The notes beneath the pieces were generated by a model that did no database searches, was not told the DNA's origin, and worked only from the letters and a program-made list of their open reading frames with translations. From assembly GCA_002269645.1 (NCBI GenBank), contig NIVC01001305.1, forward strand, positions 1 through 33,556: DNA of 33,556 nucleotides, given 5' to 3'. The position numbers and the translations under genes are program-made. Positions within the stretch are counted from its first letter, which is position 1. Every line of letters starts with the position of its first letter. This document shows positions 6,120 to 27,088 of this stretch, piece by piece. This stretch comes from Macrostomum lignano. Its lineage: Eukaryota.

Positions 6120-8072
6120 TCAGCAGCTGGGCTGCGCGTTCGCCTGCGGCACAGGCGGCGCCAGCTTGCCGGCTGCCGATTTTGCCGCGGCCTTGGCGGC
6201 GGCCAGCACCGGCCCGGCGCCCAGCGCCAGCAGCCCGTCGGCCACTCGGCGGCCCAGCCGGACACAGGCGGCCAGATGGCGGCCGTCCCGCCCGTCTGGC
6301 TCCGGGTAGTGCAGCCCGATGAAGCGCTCGGGAGACTCCGCTGCCTCCGCCTCCGCCGCCTCGCCGGCCGACTGCCGACGTCGCTTCGCGGCTGGCGGCC
6401 CCGCCTCCTCCTCGTCAGCGTCCTCCGTCAGCGCCTCGTCAGAATCGAACTCGAACACCTCAGTGCCGTCCACCGACAGCACGCGCGCCTCCAGCTTGAG
6501 CCGGCGCGGCGCGTCACCGGCCGCCTCCGACCAGACAGAGCGAACTCCGAGCGGCACCGAGCAGCCACCGTCCAGGGCGCGCAGCAGACTGCGCTCCGCC
6601 ACCGCCTGCGGGCATTTGGGAATTCGAAACTGTTGAGGATATTCATGGAAACTGACCAGCCCCGCAAACTGGCACTGACCAGCCTCACAAACTGGCACTG
6701 ACCAGCCCCGCAAACTGGCACTGACCAGCCTCACAAACTGGCACTGACCAGCCCCGCAAACTGGCACTGACCAGCCTCACAAACTGGCACTGACCAGCCC
6801 CGCAAACTGGCACTGACCAGCCTCACAAACTGGCACTGACCAGCCCCGCAAACTGGCACTGACCAGCCCCATAAACTGGCACTGACCAGCCCCACAAACT
6901 GGCACTGACCAGCCCCATAAACTGGCACTGACCAGCCCCACAAACTGGCACTGACCAGCCCCACAAACTGGCACTGACCAGCCCCATAAACTGGCACTGA
7001 CCAGCCCCACAAACTGGCACTGACCAGCCCCATAAACTGGCACTGACCAGCCCCACAAACTGGCACTGACCAGCCCCATAAACTGGCACTGACCAGCCCC
7101 ACAAACTGGCACTGACCAGCCTCGCAAACTGGCACTGACCAGCCTCACAAACTGGCACTGACCAGCCTCACAAACTGGCACTGACCAGCCCCACAAACTG
7201 GCACTGACCAGCCTCACAAACTGGCACTGACCAGCCCCCGAAAAAACTGCACAAAGCCCCATCAGACTCCGCCCCCGCACCTCCAGGAAGCTGTCCCGGT
7301 GCAGCAGGGGCCGCAGCAGCCGCACAGTGTCCTGATCGTCATCGCGGCACTGCACAGCGAGGGCGCCCTGTCCCACAGCGGGCAGGCAGTGCTGCAGGCT
7401 GCAGGCGATGCGATCAGTCCAGCCCATGCGGACGAGACCAGCCTCGGCCAGGATCAGGCCGTCCAGCCCGCACTCCTGGGCGTTCAGCTTTCGCCACCGG
7501 GTGCCGAGGTTGCCGCGCACGGACTGGAAGCGGAGGCCCGGGTGCGCCCGGCTGAGCTGCGCCGAGCGGCGGAGGCTGGACGTGCCGATGACGGAGCCGG
7601 GCGGCAGGCCGGCCAGGTCCTTGACGCCGGCCTCCACGTGGCGCGGGTGCAGGACGAGGGCGTCGCGCGGCAGCTCCCGGCGCAGGATGCAGGGCACGGC
7701 CAGGCCATCCGGGCACTGGGTGGGCAGGTCCTTCAGCGAGTGCACCACCAGCTGCACCTGGCCGCTGAGCAGGGCGGCGTCCAGCTCCTGAGTGAACAGG
7801 CCTTTGTCGCCGATGTGGGACAGCGCCCTGTCCAGGATCTGGTCCCCGATGGTGTCCATGTGGACGATGCGGAACTGGCGGCCGCAGTCCGGGCCGAGCT
7901 GACGCAGCACCTCATGCGTCTGGCGCAGTGCCAACTCGCTGCGCCGCGAGCCCACCGAGACGACGGGCAGCGCCGATGCTGACACCGAAGCTGCAGAGTC
8001 CGCATCGCCAGCAGCTGAGCTCGCGCTCGCAGAGTCGCCGCCGCTGTCCGTCCTGACAGAGGCCGGCTGCAT
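6120..8072 (-). CDS. HMBS: Hydroxymethylbilane synthase (porphobilinogen deaminase), 2 exons: 8072-7281 and 6605-6120, ~425 aa
   Basis: Motifs GSRRSELALRQ, MDTIGDQILD, KGLFTQELD, VHSLKDLPT, GTSSLRR, SVRGN, PAVGQGALAVQCR, AERSLLRALDGGCSVP (cofactor-binding Cys). Phase-0 GT-AG intron 7280-6606. Confidence 0.97.
6651..7236. repeat. 23-bp minisatellite (GACCAGCCCCRCAAACTGGCACT, ~25 copies) filling the HMBS intron
   Basis: Period 23 (GACC at 6677, 6700, ...); source of the GWSVPVCGAGQCQF ORFs. Confidence 0.95.
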
Positions 8073-8188
8073 TGCTGATTGGCTGAGGATTTCTATTGGA
8101 ATTCAATAGAACTGCCAGTCCCCGAACTGCGGAACTGAAATCAGGTTTATTGACAGCTGCTTAGCCGCAGGCCTGCGATCGCTAATTT

Positions 8189-12292: not shown

Positions 12293-13003
12293 AACAGAGG
12301 AACAAGGGATGGGGGAAGGCTGGGGAGCTGCGGAGACGTTCGGAAACTCTTGGAGCTGCTTTCGCTGAAAGCAAGAGCGGAGGGAAACTGGACGAGCACC
12401 AATTTAAATGGAAAGCAAAAGGCGAGACGAGGTTGGCTGCAGATGCCGCATTGCCCAACCCCAGGCCAAGCGAGCGGCCACTCTCAGCCAAGCCAACCGG
12501 CTTATCAGTAAAAATGGGATGCCAGCAGGCGGCTCTGGCGTTGGCGTGACGAATGAGCTTTCACCCACTCGTGCTCGAAGGCCTATCGTTCAGAGAACAA
12601 CTCGAATCGGGATAGCAGGGCGGCTGGGGCTCAAATCTCAGTGGCAAATATTCATCTGCAAACTCCTAATTAAAAACTAGGACTGTCCTGCCTGATGAAA
12701 ACGGTACCCAGGACAAGAAGCCCCCAGAGTCACTTGCGTCGCCCAGTCATCGTAGGTAACACAGGTAAAATAGGAAAGATGACTCTAGACGACTCTAAAA
12801 CGACAAGATGTCACGGTTACACAATAGAAGTCGTCAAAAGTTGTTAAAGAGTCGCCCAAGAGTAAATTTGAGGCATTTGATTGTCTGCGACTCTGAAACG
12901 ACTCTGGATTGACACAAGTGATTTTGACTCTGGGACCATCGAGTTTTACCTGAGGCATGCTGGAGTCGCTGTTGAGTCACTGAGTTGCGTCTAAAGCGCA
13001 TCT

Positions 13004-13788
13004 GGCTCATTCCATATAAGATGGACATATTTGGAAAATAGAAAAAAGTCAATATTTTTGCTTGCCATTGCCTAATTAGCCTATTTTTTTTACCAAATGT
13101 TTATATTGTGCAATATATACAATCTAAGAATAAAGGAATGGTAAAATGTTGGATTAGTATGTTATCAATTGGCAAAGTCATTTTTGTAAAAATTTGGACA
13201 TTTTTCGAAGCAAAAGACATCATTAAGATTTTGTACCTTTTAAAAACAAATAGAAAGCTTTTGAAGGTTGAAACAAACTATAGATAAAAGTATAGTACTT
13301 GCATCATCAGATAAAAGCATTGGTGACCAAATAATCTATTATATTTTTAATGTATTAGTACCTCAAAGTTACTGAATTGACAGAAAAAAATATGTTACGA
13401 CCATAATGTTACGACCATAAGGCTGCCTTTTCTTTTGTATCTTTGTTGCCTTTTGAGTTTATATATTCTAATAAAAGAGTATGATTTCTAAAGATGTTCT
13501 TAGTCAAATTTTAAAAATGTATTGCAAAATATCAAAAATGAAAAATGTTATAAGACTTTTACCTTTTAGTTTCTATATGTCAAAAATCCTGTTGTTACAA
13601 CCATAAGTGTCATTTAAGGTTTAATAGCATCTATACTAATGATGATATCTATATGAAACTCTATAAATATATTCTAGACAAAATAATCTTTCATTTAAAA
13701 TATTGGTTTAGTATATTCTATTATTAGATTTCATTTTATAAGTAAAAATAACCTGTCATGTTACGACCATGCTTATATGGAATGAGCC
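13004..13788. mobile_element. Non-autonomous DNA transposon (MITE-like), 785 bp, 17-bp TIR GGCTCATTCCATATAAG, 4-bp TSD ATCT
   Basis: Left TIR 13004-13020 and its exact reverse complement at 13772-13788. ATCT lies at 13000-13003 and 13789-13792. Internal TGTTACRACCAT repeats near 13393, 13407, 13593 and 13759. Confidence 0.88.
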
Positions 13789-13810
13789 ATCTGCATCACT
13801 TTATCAGTAA

Positions 13811-15610
13811 CACGACGGATGGCCTGCATAGCAGGCCATAGAGCCTTTCCACTCAAAACTGTTCTTTATGCCGTGCAGTCTGTGGGTAAATTGATGTCAA
13901 CTCAAGCTCGCTATTCCAGACTGCTAATTCTGCTGAGCCGAACGATTGACCATAGATATCTGTGTGGCACTGCAGTTAAGGACTGATGACCTGCATGGCA
14001 GGCCATCCGCTAATTCAGCAGAAGCAAAGACACGGTATTACGGTGTAGTTCAGATAATTTTATTTATGGAAGAGAACAAACCGTTATTAAAGTGAATATT
14101 TTTTACTTCTTACTCAGTCTGACAAATAGCAAAAAGAACCCGCGGTTTCAACAAGAAGAACTTTACAAATTTGTTAAAATACGAGTACGCCGAGGCTTCA
14201 ACAGAAATGAGTAGAAACGAGTATAAACTTTCAGGAATTTACCACGTCAATTACTGAGAAGAAAACTGTTGATTAATAAGTTCAATGGGCCTAAGTACAG
14301 GGATATAATTTATCATACCATCAAAATATAAAAGAGATTTATACACGAAAGCAATTGAATCCACATATAGAGTTAATTCAATTGTGCTATTTTCAATTTA
14401 TTTATTATTTGCCAATGCATTTGTTCCACAATGGACATCTCCAGGTCTTCATTAATACTCGTAATTTAATAGTCAGAAAACGATTCAGCACAATTGAATT
14501 TATTTTATATGTTGATTCTCGCTTTCGTTTATCTACAGCACTAGCGATTCGTCAATGCAGATGTTTTGCTCTGGCAAATAAGTATTCTGCATTCCCAGCT
14601 GCACAATTCTAAGAAACGGTCGAATCTTTCTTAGAGGGTCGTTCAAGTCTGCAATTGCGGTGCAGTCGTAGAAGCGCAGGAAGTGCATGATCTGTTTATA
14701 TCGATCTCTTGACAGGCTTGAAGGCTGCTGCATGAAAGGGCACTGGTCGAATGGGTCCGTAGACCAGTAAAGGTGCAATTCCAGCTTCTTGCTCAGCCCC
14801 ATGAAAAAGTTGGTCGCTATCACCTTCCTGATCTCGTTCAATGTGCAATTCTTCCAAGTCTTCAAGATTGGTGGCAACTCAGCTGGCTCACCTTCAGCTT
14901 GAAACCTTTCTAATTCAAACCAAGCTTTCTTGTTGGTCCACTCGCACAGCTTGTTCATCAGCGCATCAGTTAAAAATAGGTCGAAAAACCATTGAATATT
15001 GTTGTCTGGATCAGCTGGCGCCACCAAATCCGGGTGCAGGCCAGAGGTCGCCATGAATTCCGAATCTGGCTCCTGCAAACCATTCTCTCCTGGTACGACG
15101 CGTTGCCAGCCACCTATTTCTTCATCCATGGATGCACTGTCTAGATCGGAGGCCTCATCGGACGAGTCAGTAGTGGAATCGCTGCTATCTTGATCCTCGT
15201 CATCAGACATCAGCTGCTCAAAATCTGGCTCTTCGTTGAGTGATGCCATGAAAACTGCTCGTATTCTGTATGCCAACTCTTACAAAATCCAAACTCTTAT
15301 GCTAGGTTTTTTACAGTGACTTTCCTAACCACATTCATAAGATGTCATAAGACTCCAGGTCTTTAGCGGACAGTCAAACCAACTGTCTATGACATAACTT
15401 TAAAGTTATTCAACCTGTCAACGCAGTGACAACTTCCAGTACAATTTTTCAGTCAGGAGCTGTGACACTGAGTACAAACACGCCCATAGACAATATCGTA
15501 GTTGCCTGCAGCCATGGCCTGCATAGCAGGCCATCCGTCTTTAAGTGAGGAGATCAGAAGGTTTACAAAACTTAGAAAATTTTCTATGGCCTGCTATGCA
15601 GGCCACCCGT
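13811..15610 (-). mobile_element. piggyBac-like element, internally deleted; ends approximate (13811 to 15540 or 15610)
   Basis: Carries the transposase fragment. Four copies of a 21-bp palindrome lie near the ends. GTAA precedes 13811 and TTAA follows 15540 (imperfect TSD). Confidence 0.6.
14533..15276 (-). pseudogene. piggyBac/PGBD4-like transposase, N-terminal 247 aa, truncated just after the first catalytic Asp
   Basis: Acidic N-terminus, then FFDLFLTDALMNKLCEWTN, W...TLNEIRKVIA..FFMGL, YWSTD, SRDRYKQIMHFLRF, DPLRKIRPF, Y.PEQNICIDESLVL then stop. No downstream transposase sequence was recognised. Confidence 0.9.
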
Positions 15611-15751
15611 TCGCAATTGAGATGATATGTTTTCAATTCGTCAGGAAGAGGTTATGAATTAGACTAAGTAGAAATCAGTCTTCTTGAGTTAGTAGAAAAT
15701 AACATGGCTGTTAGACAACTCTTATAATTCTACAACTCAGGTGATGTTCTC

Positions 15752-16393
15752 TAGTGTTCCGCCATAGCCGTAGCTACAGCTACGGGATCCTACAGCAAAT
15801 ACAGTAAAATAGGTGCCTATGGCAGCTACGGATATGCCTATGGTAGGTAGCTGCTCTTACAGCTACAACTACAGAAATATGGTACTTGTTGTCACATTCT
15901 GTAGATTCCTGTAGCCATAGTTATTCATGTTAAAACATTGAAAAAATATTAGAAACAGGTAGAGTAAAACAAAGATACTTTTAGTAAACTGTATTATCAA
16001 CTTAGAAACTTTTAAAATATACCTTAAAAAGTACAATAAAGCACTAGCAAACTCTAATTTTTTTATGTGAAAAAGTTTAGCATTAGTACTTTCAGTAACA
16101 ATTAAGTATTGTTGCTTTAAAAAAAGACAAAATATAATCTTACAAAGGCAATTGAGTGTTTCTTTTATTTTCTAACTTAATTTGCAGTTGTTTAAGCACC
16201 AGGTTATCTTCTTGATTAAAAATATTTTGTTTTCTAGACTTTTTGTTAAAACTACGGCAATGGCTATGGGAACTACGGGAATATGGTAATATTAGGGTCC
16301 CTACAGCTACAGAATACGGAGAATTGGAATAAGCCGTAGTTTTGCTTACAGCTACGGCTACGGTACATAGACCCTCCTTATGGTGGAACACTA
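15752..16393. mobile_element. hAT-type non-autonomous element, 642 bp, TIR TAGTGTTCCRCCATA, 8-bp TSD ATGTTCTC
   Basis: TSD at 15744-15751 and 16394-16401 is identical. Subterminal GTAGCTACAGCTACGG-type repeats occur at both ends. Confidence 0.9.
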
Positions 16394-16574
16394 ATGTTCT
16401 CATGACTCAAAAGTTGCCTTTCAATCATATTATAGTTGTTTAAGTCATTAAAAAGCTACAAGTCACCCTAGCATTGCTAGAGCCATTAGTGAGTTGTTTG
16501 CAATGACTATTGATTCTTGTCATGGTAATGTTTTCAATGGTCTTGAAGCCTATCTGAGACTTTTTAAATAACTG

Positions 16575-16862
16575 TCGACTTATAACTTAAAGGTTAGGGG
16601 TTCAATTCATGCCCCAATTGGAACAATTTGTGTCCTTAAGCAAGAAACTTGACTCTGAATTGTTTTAGCTCACCTAGCTATAAAATGGATGCCAGCATTA
16701 GCTGGGTAATTGAGGGTATATGTGGTGACCCCCTAGTCCTTAGACTAAATAGCCAAAGGTAGCCTTTAGATACATTGCGCAATAGCTGCTGCTAAGCTTT
16801 TGGTTGAACATCTGCCTAATTAGGGCCTAGGGCAAGTGTATTAAATGATTATTAATATTATT
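16575..16862 (+). mobile_element. tRNA-derived SINE, heavily mutated copy (copy 3)
   Basis: Aligns along its length with the reverse complement of 24505-24816 and 26781-27088, including the AACAATTTGTGTCCTT core and an ATT-rich tail. B box degraded to GGTTCAATTC. Confidence 0.88.
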
Positions 16863-17154
16863 GACTACAATAGCAAAAAATAAAAGCTATAAAGGAATTT
16901 ATATTAGTCTGGAGCCATCAAAGAGTGAATAGGCAAATGAGTGTTTAGAGATACCAAAATGAAAGATGCCATTATAAATAGATAAATCTAGGATAAGTAG
17001 ACCTTGAACTAAAAGATTACCAAGTAAGACAAAAAATAAAGAAAATTTAATCATAGTAGCTAAAATAATTTAGGAAAGAGAAGCCAATATTGGGCAATGA
17101 AGGACAATCACTATTATATGAGACTTGGATAGATTATAAATACTTGTATATGGC

Positions 17155-18794
17155 CAGTGCTGGGCGTTAACTAGTTAATTGTTTAACTAGTTAATTAACT
17201 AGTTAAATTTTTAAAAAAATCGTTAAATTTTCGTTAAATTTTTTATGTATTAACTAGTTAACAAAAATCGTTAATTTTTTTCTGAAGTTAAAGTTAAATG
17301 ACAAAAGTTAATAATTCCGGGAAATGGAGTTCCCCGGGTTCAAAATCCGCGGGTTTCAATAGCTTGTATGCCATTAAAAAGTAAAATTAATACATACATA
17401 AAATAACTTCGCCTTTCTAAGCATTATTTAACGCGTCACAAACTACTATTACATGTATATATTTCAGTTACAAGTTATAATGTATAGAATATTCGGAAGA
17501 TTCTGGAATCTTCAACTATTATCTATTGATATTCTACCCAAGCACTACTATAAGTTATCGTTGTACATAGGGATGTCGATTCCCCGGGGAATTTTCTTAT
17601 CGGGGACCTGGGGAATTTACTGTCATTCCCCGGGGACCCCGGGGAAAAAAATAAGTAAAAAACGGCGGATAACTTAGATCTTTATAAGTCACTAAGTGGC
17701 ATTTTTTAAACTTTGATTAAAGCTTTGGATGGACTACATGTTCAAGGCGCAAGGGTAAAAACTTTAAGCAATGTTTGTTTAAAACTGTATTTGACAACGT
17801 GGCATCACCAAATCGTGCGCGCACCTTTATCAGAAAGGGTCCAGACTCCGGAGGCGGAAAATGCATACTCAGCAGCTGCACTCGTGGGAGGATAATTAAT
17901 GAATGAAACTGTTTTTATAATCGAAATTTTAATTTCTTGCAGATACAAATAAATCACCATTTTGTCCTGTCTAATACGGAGTATTTTGTTATTGTATGAT
18001 ATACCCCCCTATGCGTCAGTGACTGACGCAGGATATGGCGCTGTGCCTGCGTCAAATGTGTCAAGCCGTCAACGCAGACCAACACAATAGTCAGTAAGGC
18101 TTCTTTTTCCTGATGGGTTTCTACGCTCGTACGTTCAATTTGCTTGATTGAAAGACTCATAGTGAAAAAAACATTCAAACGGGTCGCTAATTTCATAAGA
18201 CCGAAATTTCACAACGCCAAAAATTCTGCATGCAATACAATCCTTATTGTAAAGTTTTCTACGATGTGAAATTTCGGTCTTATGAAGTTTCGGTCTTGTG
18301 AAGTATGGTGTTTCGGCGTTGTGAATTTCGGTCTTATGAACCCCCCCCATTCAAACGTGTGTTGTGTTTGAAATAATACATTGAAATAAGCAGTTTTGCG
18401 GTAAAAAAGCATAGACAGAGTTTCAATCAGCTTTCTGTGAATAATTTTCTTATTTAAATGGCAAAAATTTAGTTAAAAATGCTTTTTTTCTCCCCGGGGT
18501 CCCCGGTCTAATTCCCAGGGGAGTATTCCCCGACAAGCTCCCCAGGGCGCCGCGACCTGGCCACAGCCGCGCCGCGCCGACCTGAAATTTAAAAAAACAC
18601 GCCGAACACATGTCCGGGAAAATGTCACTTTTTCCGTTAGGGGAATTATTAACTTTAACTTTTAACTTTTCAGAAGTTAAATTTTGGGCAAAATTAAATA
18701 ATTAACTAGTTACAGTTAATTTTTTTTTGGAGCAATTAAATTAACTTTTTAACTTTTAACGAGTTAAAAAAATTGATTAACTTGCCCAGCACTG
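17155..18794. mobile_element. hAT-type non-autonomous element, 1640 bp, TIR CAGTGCTGGGC, 8-bp TSD TATATGGC
   Basis: TIRs at 17155-17165 and 18784-18794. TSD at 17147-17154 and 18795-18802 is identical. TTAACTAGTTAA subterminal palindromes. Confidence 0.92.
18181..18347. mobile_element. Mutator-like MITE (167 bp) nested in the hAT element, 9-bp TSD CATTCAAAC
   Basis: GGG...CCC termini. Inverted repeat TTCATAAGACCGAAATT(T)CACAACGCC at ~18192-18218 and ~18315-18340. TSD at 18172-18180 and 18348-18356. Confidence 0.85.
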
Positions 18795-19914
18795 TATATG
18801 GCAATATCAAAAAATTTAAGTCTAAGAGTATGCTTCAATAACTAAATTGTTACCAAACTAATAATTGACACAAAATATGCCAAAAAGCCCTAGTAGCCTA
18901 GCTTTGCTGCTTAGGTTTAGAGAGTAGAAAGTTATGGCTAGAGTTGGATTAGAGCTACCACTTGTTTATGACTAGTTTTGGATTAAAAGCTTTAATATAA
19001 TTGCTTAAGTATACTTATTGCCAATATATAGGGTATAGATAATTATATATCATTTTAAATTATATTTTAAAATAATGAATAAGACAATGTTTGATAATTA
19101 ATATAATAGATACTATGCATATACATAAGCTTTTTATCATTTTTATGAGGTAATAATGAGGCCATATTAATGTAAGACAATCTTATAAATTATATTTAGT
19201 TTTAGGCTTATATCTAAAAATCTATTTTTTTTCAATGAAATATTTTAAAGTAAGGATTATTTTATTAAATATTTTTAACATTTATAAGAGCTTCATAGGC
19301 CTAAGTGCCTTTTTAATTTTGATTATAACCATCTAATATAGAGCCCTGTCTGATAAAGCCTATGAAAATAATATATTTATTAATATTGATTATTTCCGAT
19401 TTTAAAAATAACAACAGGCCTACAAAAGTACTATAGTCTAGAGATAGGCCTATAAAGAAAAAAAACTAAAAAATTATATCAATGCATACATTAAAAAGGC
19501 ATAAAAATTGGTTAGAGTTAGAGAGACCTATAAGCATTATATTGAAAATATTTGTATACAGGTACAAAACTAACTTTTTGGTTTAAAATGATCAATAGTG
19601 CCCTAAGCCATAAGTCTTTAACTTATGCCTACAAAGGCTAAATGGACAAAAATGTACTACAAAAGTCTTACAATTTTAGAATACAAAAAGTTTTATAACA
19701 TTTCATTACATGACAAATTGTCAAAAGTAAGGCATCCTCTTTTTTTAAATACCTGCACCCGGGCCTGCAGCAATGACCACGCGACTGGGCGGGCCGAGGT
19801 TGTGACGCCCGCAGACGGGAAACTTTACAAGAAGCCAGCAGTAAAACAAAAAATTGACTCAGAATTTGAAATATTGAAAATTACTAACTACAAAGAATAA
19901 TTTAAGTGGCGCAC

Positions 19915-20262
19915 CCACAAAGGGCCTGTCAACTTAAGCTCATAAAGTGGAGCCCGAGTAACCTATATACACAAATGATACGTCATTCTGCTCACCGTGA
20001 CACCAAGAAGCAGGGTTTGGCAAAAAAGCGACGAATATTGGACTTGTAAATAATTAAGGGACTATTATACGTCAACTTAAGCTCATAAATCAGAGTCCCT
20101 GTAATTATCCCCTTGCTTGTTCTCCCCTATCCCAAGTCCAATTTTAGTCACTGCCAAACCCTGCTTCCTGGTGTTCACTGTACGTGAGCAGAATGACGGA
20201 TCATTTGTGTACATGGGTTACTCGGGCTCCATGAGCTTAAGTTGACATGCAGGCCTTTTGTT
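19915..20262. mobile_element. Fold-back element / MITE with ~110-bp imperfect inverted arms
   Basis: 19915-20022 matches the reverse complement of 20152-20262 (GTCAACTTAAGCTCAT, GGAGCCCGAGTAACC, CACAAATGAT, GTCATTCTGCTCAC, AGCAGGGTTTGGCA). No TSD was identified. Confidence 0.75.
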
Positions 20263-20629
20263 GAAGGGGGCGGATTCTGGAGGGTAAAGCTTTAATTTTT
20301 TTGCCTTTGACTTTTTTTCAGGTCCCGCCTGATAATTTCAATAATTCAAGTCTTCAACACCAGAAAATTTTTTTAAGAATTTTTTTAAAAACTGCATTTA
20401 GATTAGTTTTTACCTTAAGTTAGTTTCTTACGGAAATGATGTTTAAAAAGCAAAAAATCAGCAGCCCTGAAAGTAAGCTCTAGTCTAAAATATCAGCATC
20501 CCCTGTGTTTGGCATCGAATTCCTCTACTTACAGTGAGCCATGGCTTAACTCTAACTCTTCCTTTAGCTTGGCCTATCAACAAAAACTTCTAACAGACCC
20601 TTGGTTGCATCTCAGCAGCATTGAATCCT

Positions 20630-21455
20630 CCTTCATGAGCCACAGCATTTCAGCAATCCCCCATGCATGAGCTTTGACGTAGCTCAGCAATCTCCCCGTA
20701 AGCCTCAGCAATTCCCCCATTAGTCTTTTTATGATCTGAACCCTAACCCTAAAACTCTAACCCTGTTAAGAGTCACAGCAACAGCAATTCCGCATGAGTC
20801 TTGACATCTTAGCAACCCCCCATGAGCCACAGAATTTTAGCTACAGTATTCTCCCGGCCATTTAATAATAAATCATATAATATAAGATCTATGGTCTCGA
20901 CATCTCAGCAATTTCCCTCTCATGAGATCTAACATCCTATAAATTACCTCAATGAGTCTTTTATGGACAGGGCGATTCTTTTATTGCTGAACCCAGCTTT
21001 AACCCAGACGAAAGCCACATGCAGCATTTTAGCAATTCCCTACCACAGATCTTGACATTTCAACGATTCCCTCCATGAGCCTTGACATCCTAGCAATTCC
21101 TCAAACGAGTCTTATGGTTGAAATGACAATATCAACCATGCTACATTGTCATGCTTTGGCAAGTAAATATACGAGCCGTAAGACGTGGACAAAATTATAC
21201 AGTTTAGGCAATTACGTCTAGCTCATAGACTTGTATTAGTGATATAGATTCCTAAATTTAGAATTCTATTGCATTTTTAGTATACTTGACTAGCAATTGC
21301 CCCCCCCCGGGAGGACACAAAACTGCACCCCCTAAGCTTGCCATCTCAGTAATTCCCCCAGAAGCCTCGACATTTCAGCCATTTACCCAGTAAGCCTTCA
21401 GATCTCGTCAATTCACCCAGTAAGCCTTGCCATCTCAGCAATTCCCCCACGAGTC
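20630..21455. repeat. Dispersed, degenerate copies of the 28/29-bp satellite unit found intact at 32052-33326
   Basis: Recurrent AGCCTTGACATCTCAGCAATTCCCC-like strings in the same orientation (e.g. ~20670, 20797, 21077, 21335, 21423). Confidence 0.8.
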
Positions 21456-22090
21456 TTAAAGGCTAACTTCTTTGACCAAAAACAATACTTTAAGCTATTC
21501 CAGAACTGATCAATTCCAGAAAAAGTACATTTAATTAGTATTGCCATTGGCAGCTCAAGCAATAACTAAAAATTAACTTTTTGTTCAAATAAACGTTTTA
21601 ACTTATAAAAAATCTACGCTATTTCAACCCCATTTGCCTCGCGTAGGCACAGGAAATGTTTTTAAATACGAGTCGTAATCAAAATTGACACCTCTGCAAG
21701 TCTCAGCAGCTTTGGGGAATAGAGGAATTATTTATAGCATCAGCTCGAGAATTGAAGTTTAGTCTATGGCCATATAAACATATTGAGCTCTCACTGAGAG
21801 AAAAATACTCAAAATTATAGATCTTCTAATGTAAAAATTTGAAATTAGAAAATTAGTTGTGCAGTTTTTAAGGAGATGTGAATCTTCCACTCAAAGAAAG
21901 TCAGAAAGAAAGTCAGAAAGTGAAAGTGAATTGAAAAAAGACCTTAGACAAATAAAAAATCCATTTTAAGCTGCCCAAAGTTTTTGCATGTGTGTTTCAT
22001 CTAGCTGCTGCGCAAAAATAAGTAGCATATGGCAGACATGGCTAGCAATAAAAAGTACGAGCTATTTTTACTCGTAATTGCCTGTCACAG

Positions 22091-24504: not shown

Positions 24505-24816
24505 ATTAATAATAATACTAACTGATTACACCTGCCCCAATTGGGCCAGATGTGCAACCGACAGCTCAGCCGCAGCCATTGCTGCGGGCTGCGAATCTGA
24601 TGGCTGCGAACGGCTGTTCAGTCCGAGGACTGGGGGGTCGCCACACACACCCTCAATTACCCAATGCTGGCACCCATTTTACAGCTGGGTGAACTGTGAA
24701 ACAATGCAGAGTTAAGTGTCTTGCTCAAGGACACAAATTGTTCCAGTGGTATCGGGAATCGAACCTCCGACCTTCAAGTCATGAGTCCGACGCTCTAACC
24801 TCCAATCTACAACCCC
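24505..24816 (-). mobile_element. tRNA-derived SINE (copy 1)
   Basis: Minus strand: tRNA-like head with B box GGTTCGATTCC, central TGTGTCCTTGAGCAAGACACTTAAC...CCCAGCTGTAAAATGGG, and a (TTA)n tail. Confidence 0.9.
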
Positions 24817-25719
24817 TACAGTTAAGCAAAAGTTTATAAATAGTAAAATAAAAATATTCAAGCACTAAGGCTGATGATCTGAACTCTGATCAAGAATTTC
24901 TATTTGCAACTTTGGAGCCATCTTAGGTTAAAAAATATCGCAAATTATCGCAAATTTTCGCATCGATGATGGTAACTTTAGGCTAACTTCATTTTTTAGC
25001 TAAAATGCAGAATTAATGCGCATTTTCATCCAGATTCAGTTCACTTTAGCTAAAAGGTCGCCTGAATGACGTCAGCTTCATCGAAAGCATTGTCGATCAG
25101 CAGCTTCGAAGCGGCTGCCTATGGACACTTAGCTCTTGTGCTACGAATCGAGGATCAAGGTTTGAAGCAGCAATGCATGCTGCAGTAAGACTACCGGTAC
25201 GCAAGCTGCTGCAAAAGGTGGCTACCTAAGGTTACAGCAGCTCAAGAACCCACCTTTGCAGTAAGACGGCCTGCATGGTAGCTGTGAGTTGCAAACTTGG
25301 CTTGATGCAGCAATTCATCCAGCTCATGGAGATTTGGGCTTGAGGCATGAGCACCTGAACTGACGGGGAGGCTGCATCAGACACTGACAGCTTTTCTCTT
25401 CAAGAGTCATTGCTACGAGGAAGCAAGAATGAAAGCCAAAGCTGGAGATTTGAACTTCGCGGACATCTTTGTTCATTTTATATGAGCTGCAAATGAAGTG
25501 GCCAAGAGTTGGATCAGAAATGGTACCACCAAAATTTCTGCCCACCGAAGTGCTTGAAGAGTAGTAAGACTGCGTGCTGCTAGGAGGCCGCGTGAGCTGC
25601 ACCAAACAGCGATGATCTCAATGGATCTCATATAGCGGCCGTGGCAAACCAGTCCAGCTCCGGACGTGACAGTTTGTTCGGTCCTCTGTGCGCCTGGACC
25701 TTCTGTGCAGCAGCGCGCT

Positions 25720-26780: not shown

Positions 26781-27088
26781 AATAATAATAATAATAATAA
26801 AATTGATTACACCTGCCCTATTGGGCAGATGTGCAACCGGACAGCTCAGCCGCAGTTATTGCGCGGCAAATCTGAAGGCTGCGAACGGCTGTTCAGTCCG
26901 AGGACTGGGGTTGCTACACACACCCTTAATTATCCCAGCTAATGCTGGGACCCTGAAGCTGGGTGAACTGAAGCAATGCAGAGTTAAGTGTCTTGCTCAA
27001 GGACACAAATTGTTACAGTGGGATCCCGAGTCGAACCCCCGACCTTCAAGTCGTGAGTCCGACGCTCTGACCACTGGGCCACAACGCC
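26781..27088 (-). mobile_element. tRNA-derived SINE (copy 2)
   Basis: Minus strand: A box TGGCCCAGTGG, B box GGTTCGACTC, the same central domain as copy 1, and a (TTA)n tail at 26781-26800. Confidence 0.92.

Follow-up and report, generated by a model that had tools for sequence, protein, structure and literature searches.

Several described systems leave mutation patterns that resemble parts of what is found here. Fungal repeat-induced point mutation (RIP), which in Neurospora crassa depends on RID/DIM-2, makes C:G>T:A changes with a preference for CpA on both strands and leaves AT- and TpA-rich relics. It is triggered by duplication, acts in premeiotic bursts and strikes all sufficiently similar copies. 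The SINEs studied here, from the flatworm Macrostomum lignano, differ: ~5,000 near-identical copies have escaped, the main target is CpG and the change is slow; the host, moreover, is an animal. Editing of retroelements by AID/APOBEC enzymes also produces C>T/G>A hypermutation of retroelement copies. It is strand-asymmetric and governed by the 5' neighbor (TC, CC, WRC), whereas in M. lignano the strands are equal and the 3' neighbor decides. Animal CpG decay, as in Alu and L1 of mammals and in the methylated gene bodies of invertebrates, shares with our case the near-complete loss of CpG and the hypermutability between paralogs. It is classically confined to CpG, while CpA in the affected M. 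lignano copies changes 4–5 times faster than CpC/CpT.

Mammalian DNMT3A/B methylate non-CpG sites, mostly CpA, in oocytes, embryonic stem cells and neurons. The order of preference (CpG, then CpA, then CpT/CpC) and the lack of strand symmetry are like those reported here. Animal non-CpG methylation is usually seen as a vertebrate specialty of neurons, oocytes and stem cells, and it is essentially vertebrate where described, while the present footprint lies in a flatworm germline lineage. We know of no evolutionary mutation footprint of animal non-CpG methylation. The closest mechanistic match comes from the fungus Zymoseptoria tritici, where 5-methylcytosine (5mC) deposited by the transposon-methylating Dim2 makes C>T changes in transposons more frequent at CpA specifically, without RIP machinery (PMC8016269). 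That enzyme belongs to the fungal DIM-2 class and its effect was shown by experiment; in M. lignano the role of DNMT3 is putative, CpG is struck harder and the evidence is sequence only. According to reviews (PMC11292947, PMC9246332 and PMC10658182), M. lignano has retained DNMT1 and DNMT3, and its 5mC level is low; the genome-wide methylation pattern of free-living flatworms has been described as unknown (PMC9246332).

SINE copies in the window

The window is the whole stretch of 33,556 nt that was analyzed. It contains three copies of one tRNA-derived SINE of ~292 nt with a (TAT)n tail:

16537–16864, forward strand: SINE copy 3, old and decayed (consensus alignment and per-context spectrum; nhmmer match at 16574–16845)
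24522–24817, reverse strand: SINE copy 1, young subfamily, 5.6% from the consensus, without CpA or CpG excess
26802–27088, reverse strand: SINE copy 2, young subfamily, 7.7% from the consensus, with a flat spectrum
24622–24627 and 26900–26905 (consensus 194–197): CCTCGG state in copies 1 and 2

The element is a tRNA-derived SINE by its head with A and B boxes, its short length, its simple-repeat tail and its high copy number. The B box in the consensus head is GGTTCGATTCC. The head takes up a tRNA-like, Val-CAC-like fold in ARAGORN at a relaxed threshold; no Rfam match and no strict ARAGORN tRNA was found in the window. Degenerate 35-nt patterns match ~5,010 copies in the genome (Mlig_3_7). 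These ~5,000 copies are near-identical, lying ~4% from the consensus. The family consensus of 292 nt was built from ~50 genomic copies.

Alignment to this consensus changes the outline of copy 3. An earlier note placed its start at 16575, but the true start is ~16537, and the head is present, badly decayed and interrupted by a small insertion. Copies 1 and 2, which served there as intact siblings, are merely members of a much younger main subfamily. They share CG within CCTCGG with each other and with the paralog of copy 1 on contig C387, while 48 of 51 copies have TG. This may reflect either a small sub-subfamily or the joint history of neighboring copies. As the family consensus is CCTTGG, just one change separates it from the CCTTAG of copy 3, and the example built on CCTCGG needs correction.

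Substitution spectrum of copy 3

Copy 3 differs from the consensus by 63 substitutions over 291 aligned positions. The earlier manual count of about 33, with about 25 of the C>T type, was therefore an undercount; the C>T excess itself stands, with 36 of the 63 being C>T/G>A and the other 27 not C>T. Mutations are found at 17 of the 47 CpA/TpG sites (36%) and at 12 of the 28 CpG positions (43%), against 3/45 for CpC and 4/38 for CpT, pooled 7/83 (8%). The difference from CpC+CpT is significant both for CpA (Fisher p = 2.5e-4) and for CpG (p = 1.2e-4), and the CpA/TpG enrichment thus survives a proper alignment. The estimate of about 17 non-CpG CpA/TpG changes proved exact. Both strands are struck as claimed, with 8 of the CpA changes on the plus and 9 on the minus strand. 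The direction is fixed by the B box, where the change GGTTCGA>GGTTCAA is confirmed at consensus position 57.

Of the 14 CpGs only 2 survive, the TpA count goes up from 11 to 34 and G+C drops from 55% to 40%. There are 48 G:C to A:T substitutions versus 7 in the opposite direction, and T>C changes number only 4 (3%). The most struck trinucleotides are CAG (9/16) and TCA (7/10, p = 0.02). C>A at CpA is somewhat raised as well (6/47), which deamination of 5mC does not predict.

The locus, its paralogs and the surrounding transposon island

M. lignano is a neopolyploid with three subgenomes (PMC10733133), and the locus of copy 3 is accordingly present three times: on C1305 (the window), on C1698 (100% identical over the SINE) and on C387 (92–96% identical, 93% over the SINE). 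The following features surround it:

13000–22000, no strand: AT-rich island of transposon debris, 29–43% G+C, between G+C-rich genes (composition profile and dinucleotide indices)
15652–17142, no strand: block aligned with the C387 paralog, holding the MITE, a 143-nt spacer and copy 3
15751–16393, forward strand: MITE-like repeat of 643 bp, 143 nt upstream of copy 3, with at least 37 genomic copies at 89–91% identity
14533–15279, reverse strand: piggyBac-type transposase remnant, open over 248 codons (Pfam DDE_Tnp_1_7, profile positions 5–135 of 349)
17155–18793: hAT-like insert of 1,639 bp with terminal inverted repeats and an 8-bp target-site duplication
7200–8102, reverse strand: porphobilinogen deaminase (HMBS) exon (Pfam PF01379)

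The TpA/ApT index reaches its maximum for the window at 15001–19500 (1.04–1.17), where (CpA+TpG)/(ApC+GpT) is 1.11–1.14. Between the window and C387, 18 of 32 CpG cytosines (56%) differ in the block 15652–17142, versus 3 of 83 (3.6%) around copy 1 (Fisher p = 8e-10). Around copy 1 the CpG differences between paralogs are the same as those in other contexts. The block also shows seven CA/TG double differences, and within the MITE the paralog differences are mostly CpG<->TpG/CpA. CpA<->TpA differences in the parts of the block that flank the SINE are ~2-fold those of CpC/CpT per site, which is not significant (p = 0.11). Within the SINE, approximately three CpA>TpA changes are private to one paralog; the process therefore ran on after the subgenome split. 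We infer from this pattern that the block is germline CpG-methylated, locally and recently; the same signature is absent around copy 1.

The other elements of the island were characterized as follows. The terminal repeats of the MITE measure ~18 bp (TAGTGTTCCRCCATA), and CCGTAG/CTACGG motifs are abundant in it. Long inverted arms, sought in it for polarizing the changes, were not found; it has only the ~18-bp terminal repeats. Further copies of the MITE lie at most 0.5 kb from old SINE copies on C356/C1592 and C416. The spacer at 16400–16540 (~140 nt) shows a 73% match to sequence ~1 kb from another SINE copy (L035/L037) and may be a fragment of a further repeat. The insert at 17155–18793 carries the terminal inverted repeats CAGTGCTGGGC.../...GCCCAGCACTG and the target-site duplication TATATGGC, and it is missing from both paralogous contigs, C1698 and C387. 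It looks like a recent insertion of a hAT-like non-autonomous DNA transposon, specific to one subgenome copy. Outside the open segment of the piggyBac remnant, the remainder of the gene is broken. The reading frame of the HMBS exon runs open into a 23-nt minisatellite array (6513–7381), the whole spanning 6513–8102 on the reverse strand; in the window there are at least 10 other minisatellite arrays, their periods ranging from 11 to 44 nt.

Young copies have a flat spectrum

In 74 young copies, the rare C>T changes occur at nearly the same rate in every context: 0.90% for CpA, 0.85% for CpC, 0.68% for CpG and 0.82% for CpT. Fifteen copies with 56% of the transversion load of copy 3 show 5.5% at CpA, 2.1% at CpG and 3.5% at CpC/CpT (CpY). 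When these are scaled by transversions to the age of copy 3, its CpY and T>C changes are as expected, and CpA is ~3.7-fold and CpG ~11-fold in excess. Time alone thus does not account for the excess, which is a property of certain copies; age and methylation state are partly confounded in the old class.

One young-type SINE copy (C2790:109305-109581, L039) carries 11 CpG transitions and only one transversion. It is apparently a recent insertion into methylated DNA; it was chosen for its similarity to copy 3 and is not an unbiased example.

Recurrence of CpA changes in old copies genome-wide

Old copies were counted with 35-nt degenerate patterns in which every C or G was also allowed to be its transition product. 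The samples come from one SINE family throughout and cover copies free of transversions and indels. Raw counts are inflated by triplicate paralogs, yet after de-duplication the tests still give p < 1e-12. The first census covers consensus 186–220 and yields 82 matches, 44 of them distinct (Mlig_3_7). It was selected on only two CpG-derived states, 209A and 212T, which mark an older 'subfamily B'. CpA-type sites are mutated in 30.5% and CpY-type sites in 7.5% of cases (odds ratio 5.4, p = 1e-31). The second census (consensus 207–241, 80 matches) gives 31% for CpA-type versus 8.6% for CpY-type sites (p = 6e-22). Here 5.8% of the CpG dinucleotides are intact and 94% are lost. The TG and CA products are about equal, so the decay is independent from copy to copy, and former CpGs often proceeded to TA. 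Sites 208 and 213, which are CpA/TpG only since the decay of a CpG, show the further step to TpA in 15–35% of copies. The per-site rates in this old class stand at 15.8 : 4.1 : 1 for CpG, CpA and CpC/CpT.

The CpA changes occur in every combination: all 21 of the 21 CpA site pairs in the first census show the four possible combinations (four-gamete test). They are therefore recurrent and independent rather than inherited, and the TpA states are not those of a separate subfamily, which would have undone the earlier note's reading. CpA is still the majority state at these sites, and the direction of change is thereby fixed.

The excess goes together with the loss of CpG. Among copies with T at CpA site 188 whose CpGs are intact, 2.0% of CpA-type and 2.9% of CpY-type sites are mutated. 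Where the CpGs have decayed the values are 43% and 6.7% (30 distinct sequences, with the window locus excluded). A double change at consensus 187–188 (T187 + T188, giving CTTAG) is seen in many otherwise intact copies. CTTAG probably marks a young sub-subfamily, and for this reason positions 186 and 187 were dropped from one tally. A pattern selected on CpG>TpG at position 180 matched mostly young copies and showed no CpA excess; being mostly young, these matches are silent on methylation. Further copies with several TpA changes came to light here for the first time.

The earlier note had predicted a minority class of copies shifted to TpA, and it is found genome-wide with ~80 sampled members per segment. 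Copy 3 is an ordinary member of this small old class, which would make up perhaps ~2–3% of the ~5,000 copies when extrapolated from the 80–82 pattern matches. When copy 3 itself served as the genome query, the best 40 candidates included none above 82% identity outside the paralogous locus. This tests subfamily membership only weakly, as an old copy is closer to the young consensus than to other old copies.

Sequence specificity and methyltransferase genes

In the old copies the 3' base decides which cytosines change: CpG and CpA are struck, and CpT and CpC are spared. In the first census the cytosine of CTG, the CWG counterpart of CAG, shows no elevated rate, so the target is not the symmetric CWG motif. 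No consistent effect of the 5' neighbor was found across ten census sites, and TCA is enriched only in copy 3. The absence of a consistent 5'-neighbor rule, together with the symmetry of the strands, disfavors editing of the AID/APOBEC type, which would leave strand-asymmetric clusters with a 5' motif.

DNMT3-type de novo methyltransferases prefer CpG, then CpA, then the rest, and the order of ~16:4:1 observed here agrees with this preference. The usual animal mCpA:mCpG ratios are lower than a CpA rate of one quarter of the CpG rate, which speaks against methylation of CpA as the source. Three gene loci gave matches to the C5-methyltransferase domain PF00145, and each locus has three paralogous copies. 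One of these loci is preceded at a distance of 3.4 kb, on the same strand, by an ADD_DNMT3 domain (PF17980); DNMT3, which the earlier note had proposed to look for, is present in the genome. We read the three loci as putative DNMT1, DNMT2 and DNMT3. The question of a RID/Masc1-type homolog comes down to the same three PF00145 loci, one with ADD_DNMT3, which are classed by domain matches.

Discussion

The pattern of copy 3 probably arose by slow deamination of 5mC, placed on CpG and to a lesser degree on CpA in a minority of silenced, methylated transposon copies. DNMT1 and DNMT3 would keep CpG methylated in transposon islands, and DNMT3 would also place lower-level methylation on CpA. Deamination of 5mC would then give T:G mismatches, fixed as TpG/CpA and TpA, and cytosine would slowly turn into thymine on both strands of the old SINE class. 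What the sequence shows is the mutation spectrum, seen again at independent loci and limited to copies that have lost their CpGs, together with hypermutable CpG in the local block and a DNMT3 in the genome. CpG is hypermutable in the same DNA, both in copy 3 (2 of 14 left) and in its block (56% versus 3.6% around copy 1), and in the second census 5.8% is intact. The PF00145 loci and PF17980 agree with the reviews that DNMT1 and DNMT3 are encoded. The spectrum suggests methylation, present or past, of the CpA cytosines; the chemical step would be deamination of 5mC and not of C. Non-CpG methylation followed by deamination, which the earlier note had put forward as a possible cause, is thus the best-supported explanation, with the methylation of CpA read from the spectrum.

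The main rival is a context-dependent mutation process that needs no methylation and acts in heterochromatic AT-rich transposon islands, beside ordinary CpG-methylation decay. For example, C might deaminate spontaneously at a higher rate where CpA/TpG steps melt easily, or repair or replication might be error-prone there. Such a process fits the position of copy 3 in an island of 29–43% G+C with the highest TpA/ApT index of the window. It also fits the raised C>A at CpA in copy 3 and the limitation of the excess to a minority of copies, and mCpA is here a prediction from the sequence. However, the effect tracks the 3' base just as DNMT3 does (CpG and CpA, but not CpT, CpC or CTG), the CpA excess accompanies near-complete CpG loss copy by copy, and neither T>C nor CpY transitions are raised. 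We consider this explanation unlikely, though it deserves more weight than the others that follow.

We can also imagine, as a rather improbable extension, a chromatin- or small-RNA-targeted germline system that methylates silenced transposon copies at CpA and CpG, or deaminates them enzymatically, and so mutates them irreversibly. It would be an animal functional analog of the fungal RIP/Dim2 defense without a homology trigger.

An enzymatic defense analogous to RIP, in which an AID/APOBEC-like deaminase or methyltransferase-catalyzed deamination strikes silenced copies in bursts, is less probable still, and we hold it quite doubtful. Such a defense would favor CpA on either strand and leave relics rich in TpA, like those of fungal RIP. 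CpA-preferring C:G>T:A change on both strands is indeed seen in copy 3 and in the old class, the shifted copies form a distinct minority class, and TCA is the most struck trinucleotide in copy 3 by proportion. But the young copies, ~5,000 in number and near-identical, have been spared, so that duplication does not act as a trigger. Their flat C>T spectrum rules out a homology-triggered RIP-like mechanism, and this version of the defense, which the earlier note had raised as repeat-induced hypermutation, is largely refuted. A burst would give many transitions and few other changes; copy 3 has 27 other substitutions, and its CpA changes persisted past the paralog split. CpG is a poorer target than CpA in the Neurospora hierarchy, whereas here CpG is struck harder (94% lost versus 31% for CpA). 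A query made from a RIP-converted consensus (CpA/TpG to TpA) found a best match of 83%, no better than the 84% for a control converted at CpC/CpT; this search, which did not retrieve copy 3 either, can exclude only copies that were converted heavily and recently. The deaminase variant is further opposed by the symmetric strands (8 versus 9) and the lack of a consistent 5'-neighbor motif at the census sites. As for a dedicated methyltransferase, only three C5-methyltransferase loci were found, which match DNMT1, DNMT2 and DNMT3.

An artifact of polarity or ancestry, in which an older master was already TpA and the changes are subfamily-diagnostic states, is essentially excluded. An older subfamily does exist: among 15 sequences with two decayed CpG positions, 209A is present in 14 and 212T in 12. 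Copy 3 has 209A, and several old copies share TATATG and CTAG with it. Nevertheless, most old copies still have CpA at every CpA site but 201 (18/30), and all 21 site pairs fail the four-gamete test for simple descent. No copy outside the paralogous locus exceeds 82% identity to copy 3 among the best 40 candidates, and sites 208 and 213 reach TpA although they became CpA/TpG only after CpG decay. At position 57 the canonical B box sets the direction. Plain old age, with drift to an AT-rich local equilibrium and no context effect, would account for the 48 versus 7 substitutions and the fall in G+C, but it is essentially excluded too, and a shade more firmly, by the ~3.7-fold CpA and ~11-fold CpG excess after transversion scaling, at which CpY and T>C are as expected, and by the CpA versus CpY contrast within copy 3.

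If deamination of 5mC at CpG and CpA is indeed the cause, the 4–5-fold excess of CpA>TpA in CpG-decayed copies predicts substantial germline methylation of CpA at the transposon islands of M. lignano. Such methylation, if true, would cause enough mutation to contribute to the destruction of old transposons. Repeat dating and estimates of neutral rates in M. lignano go wrong if CpA is counted as an ordinary context. The prediction is directly testable with existing bisulfite or long-read data and with RNAi of DNMT3 in this established laboratory model.
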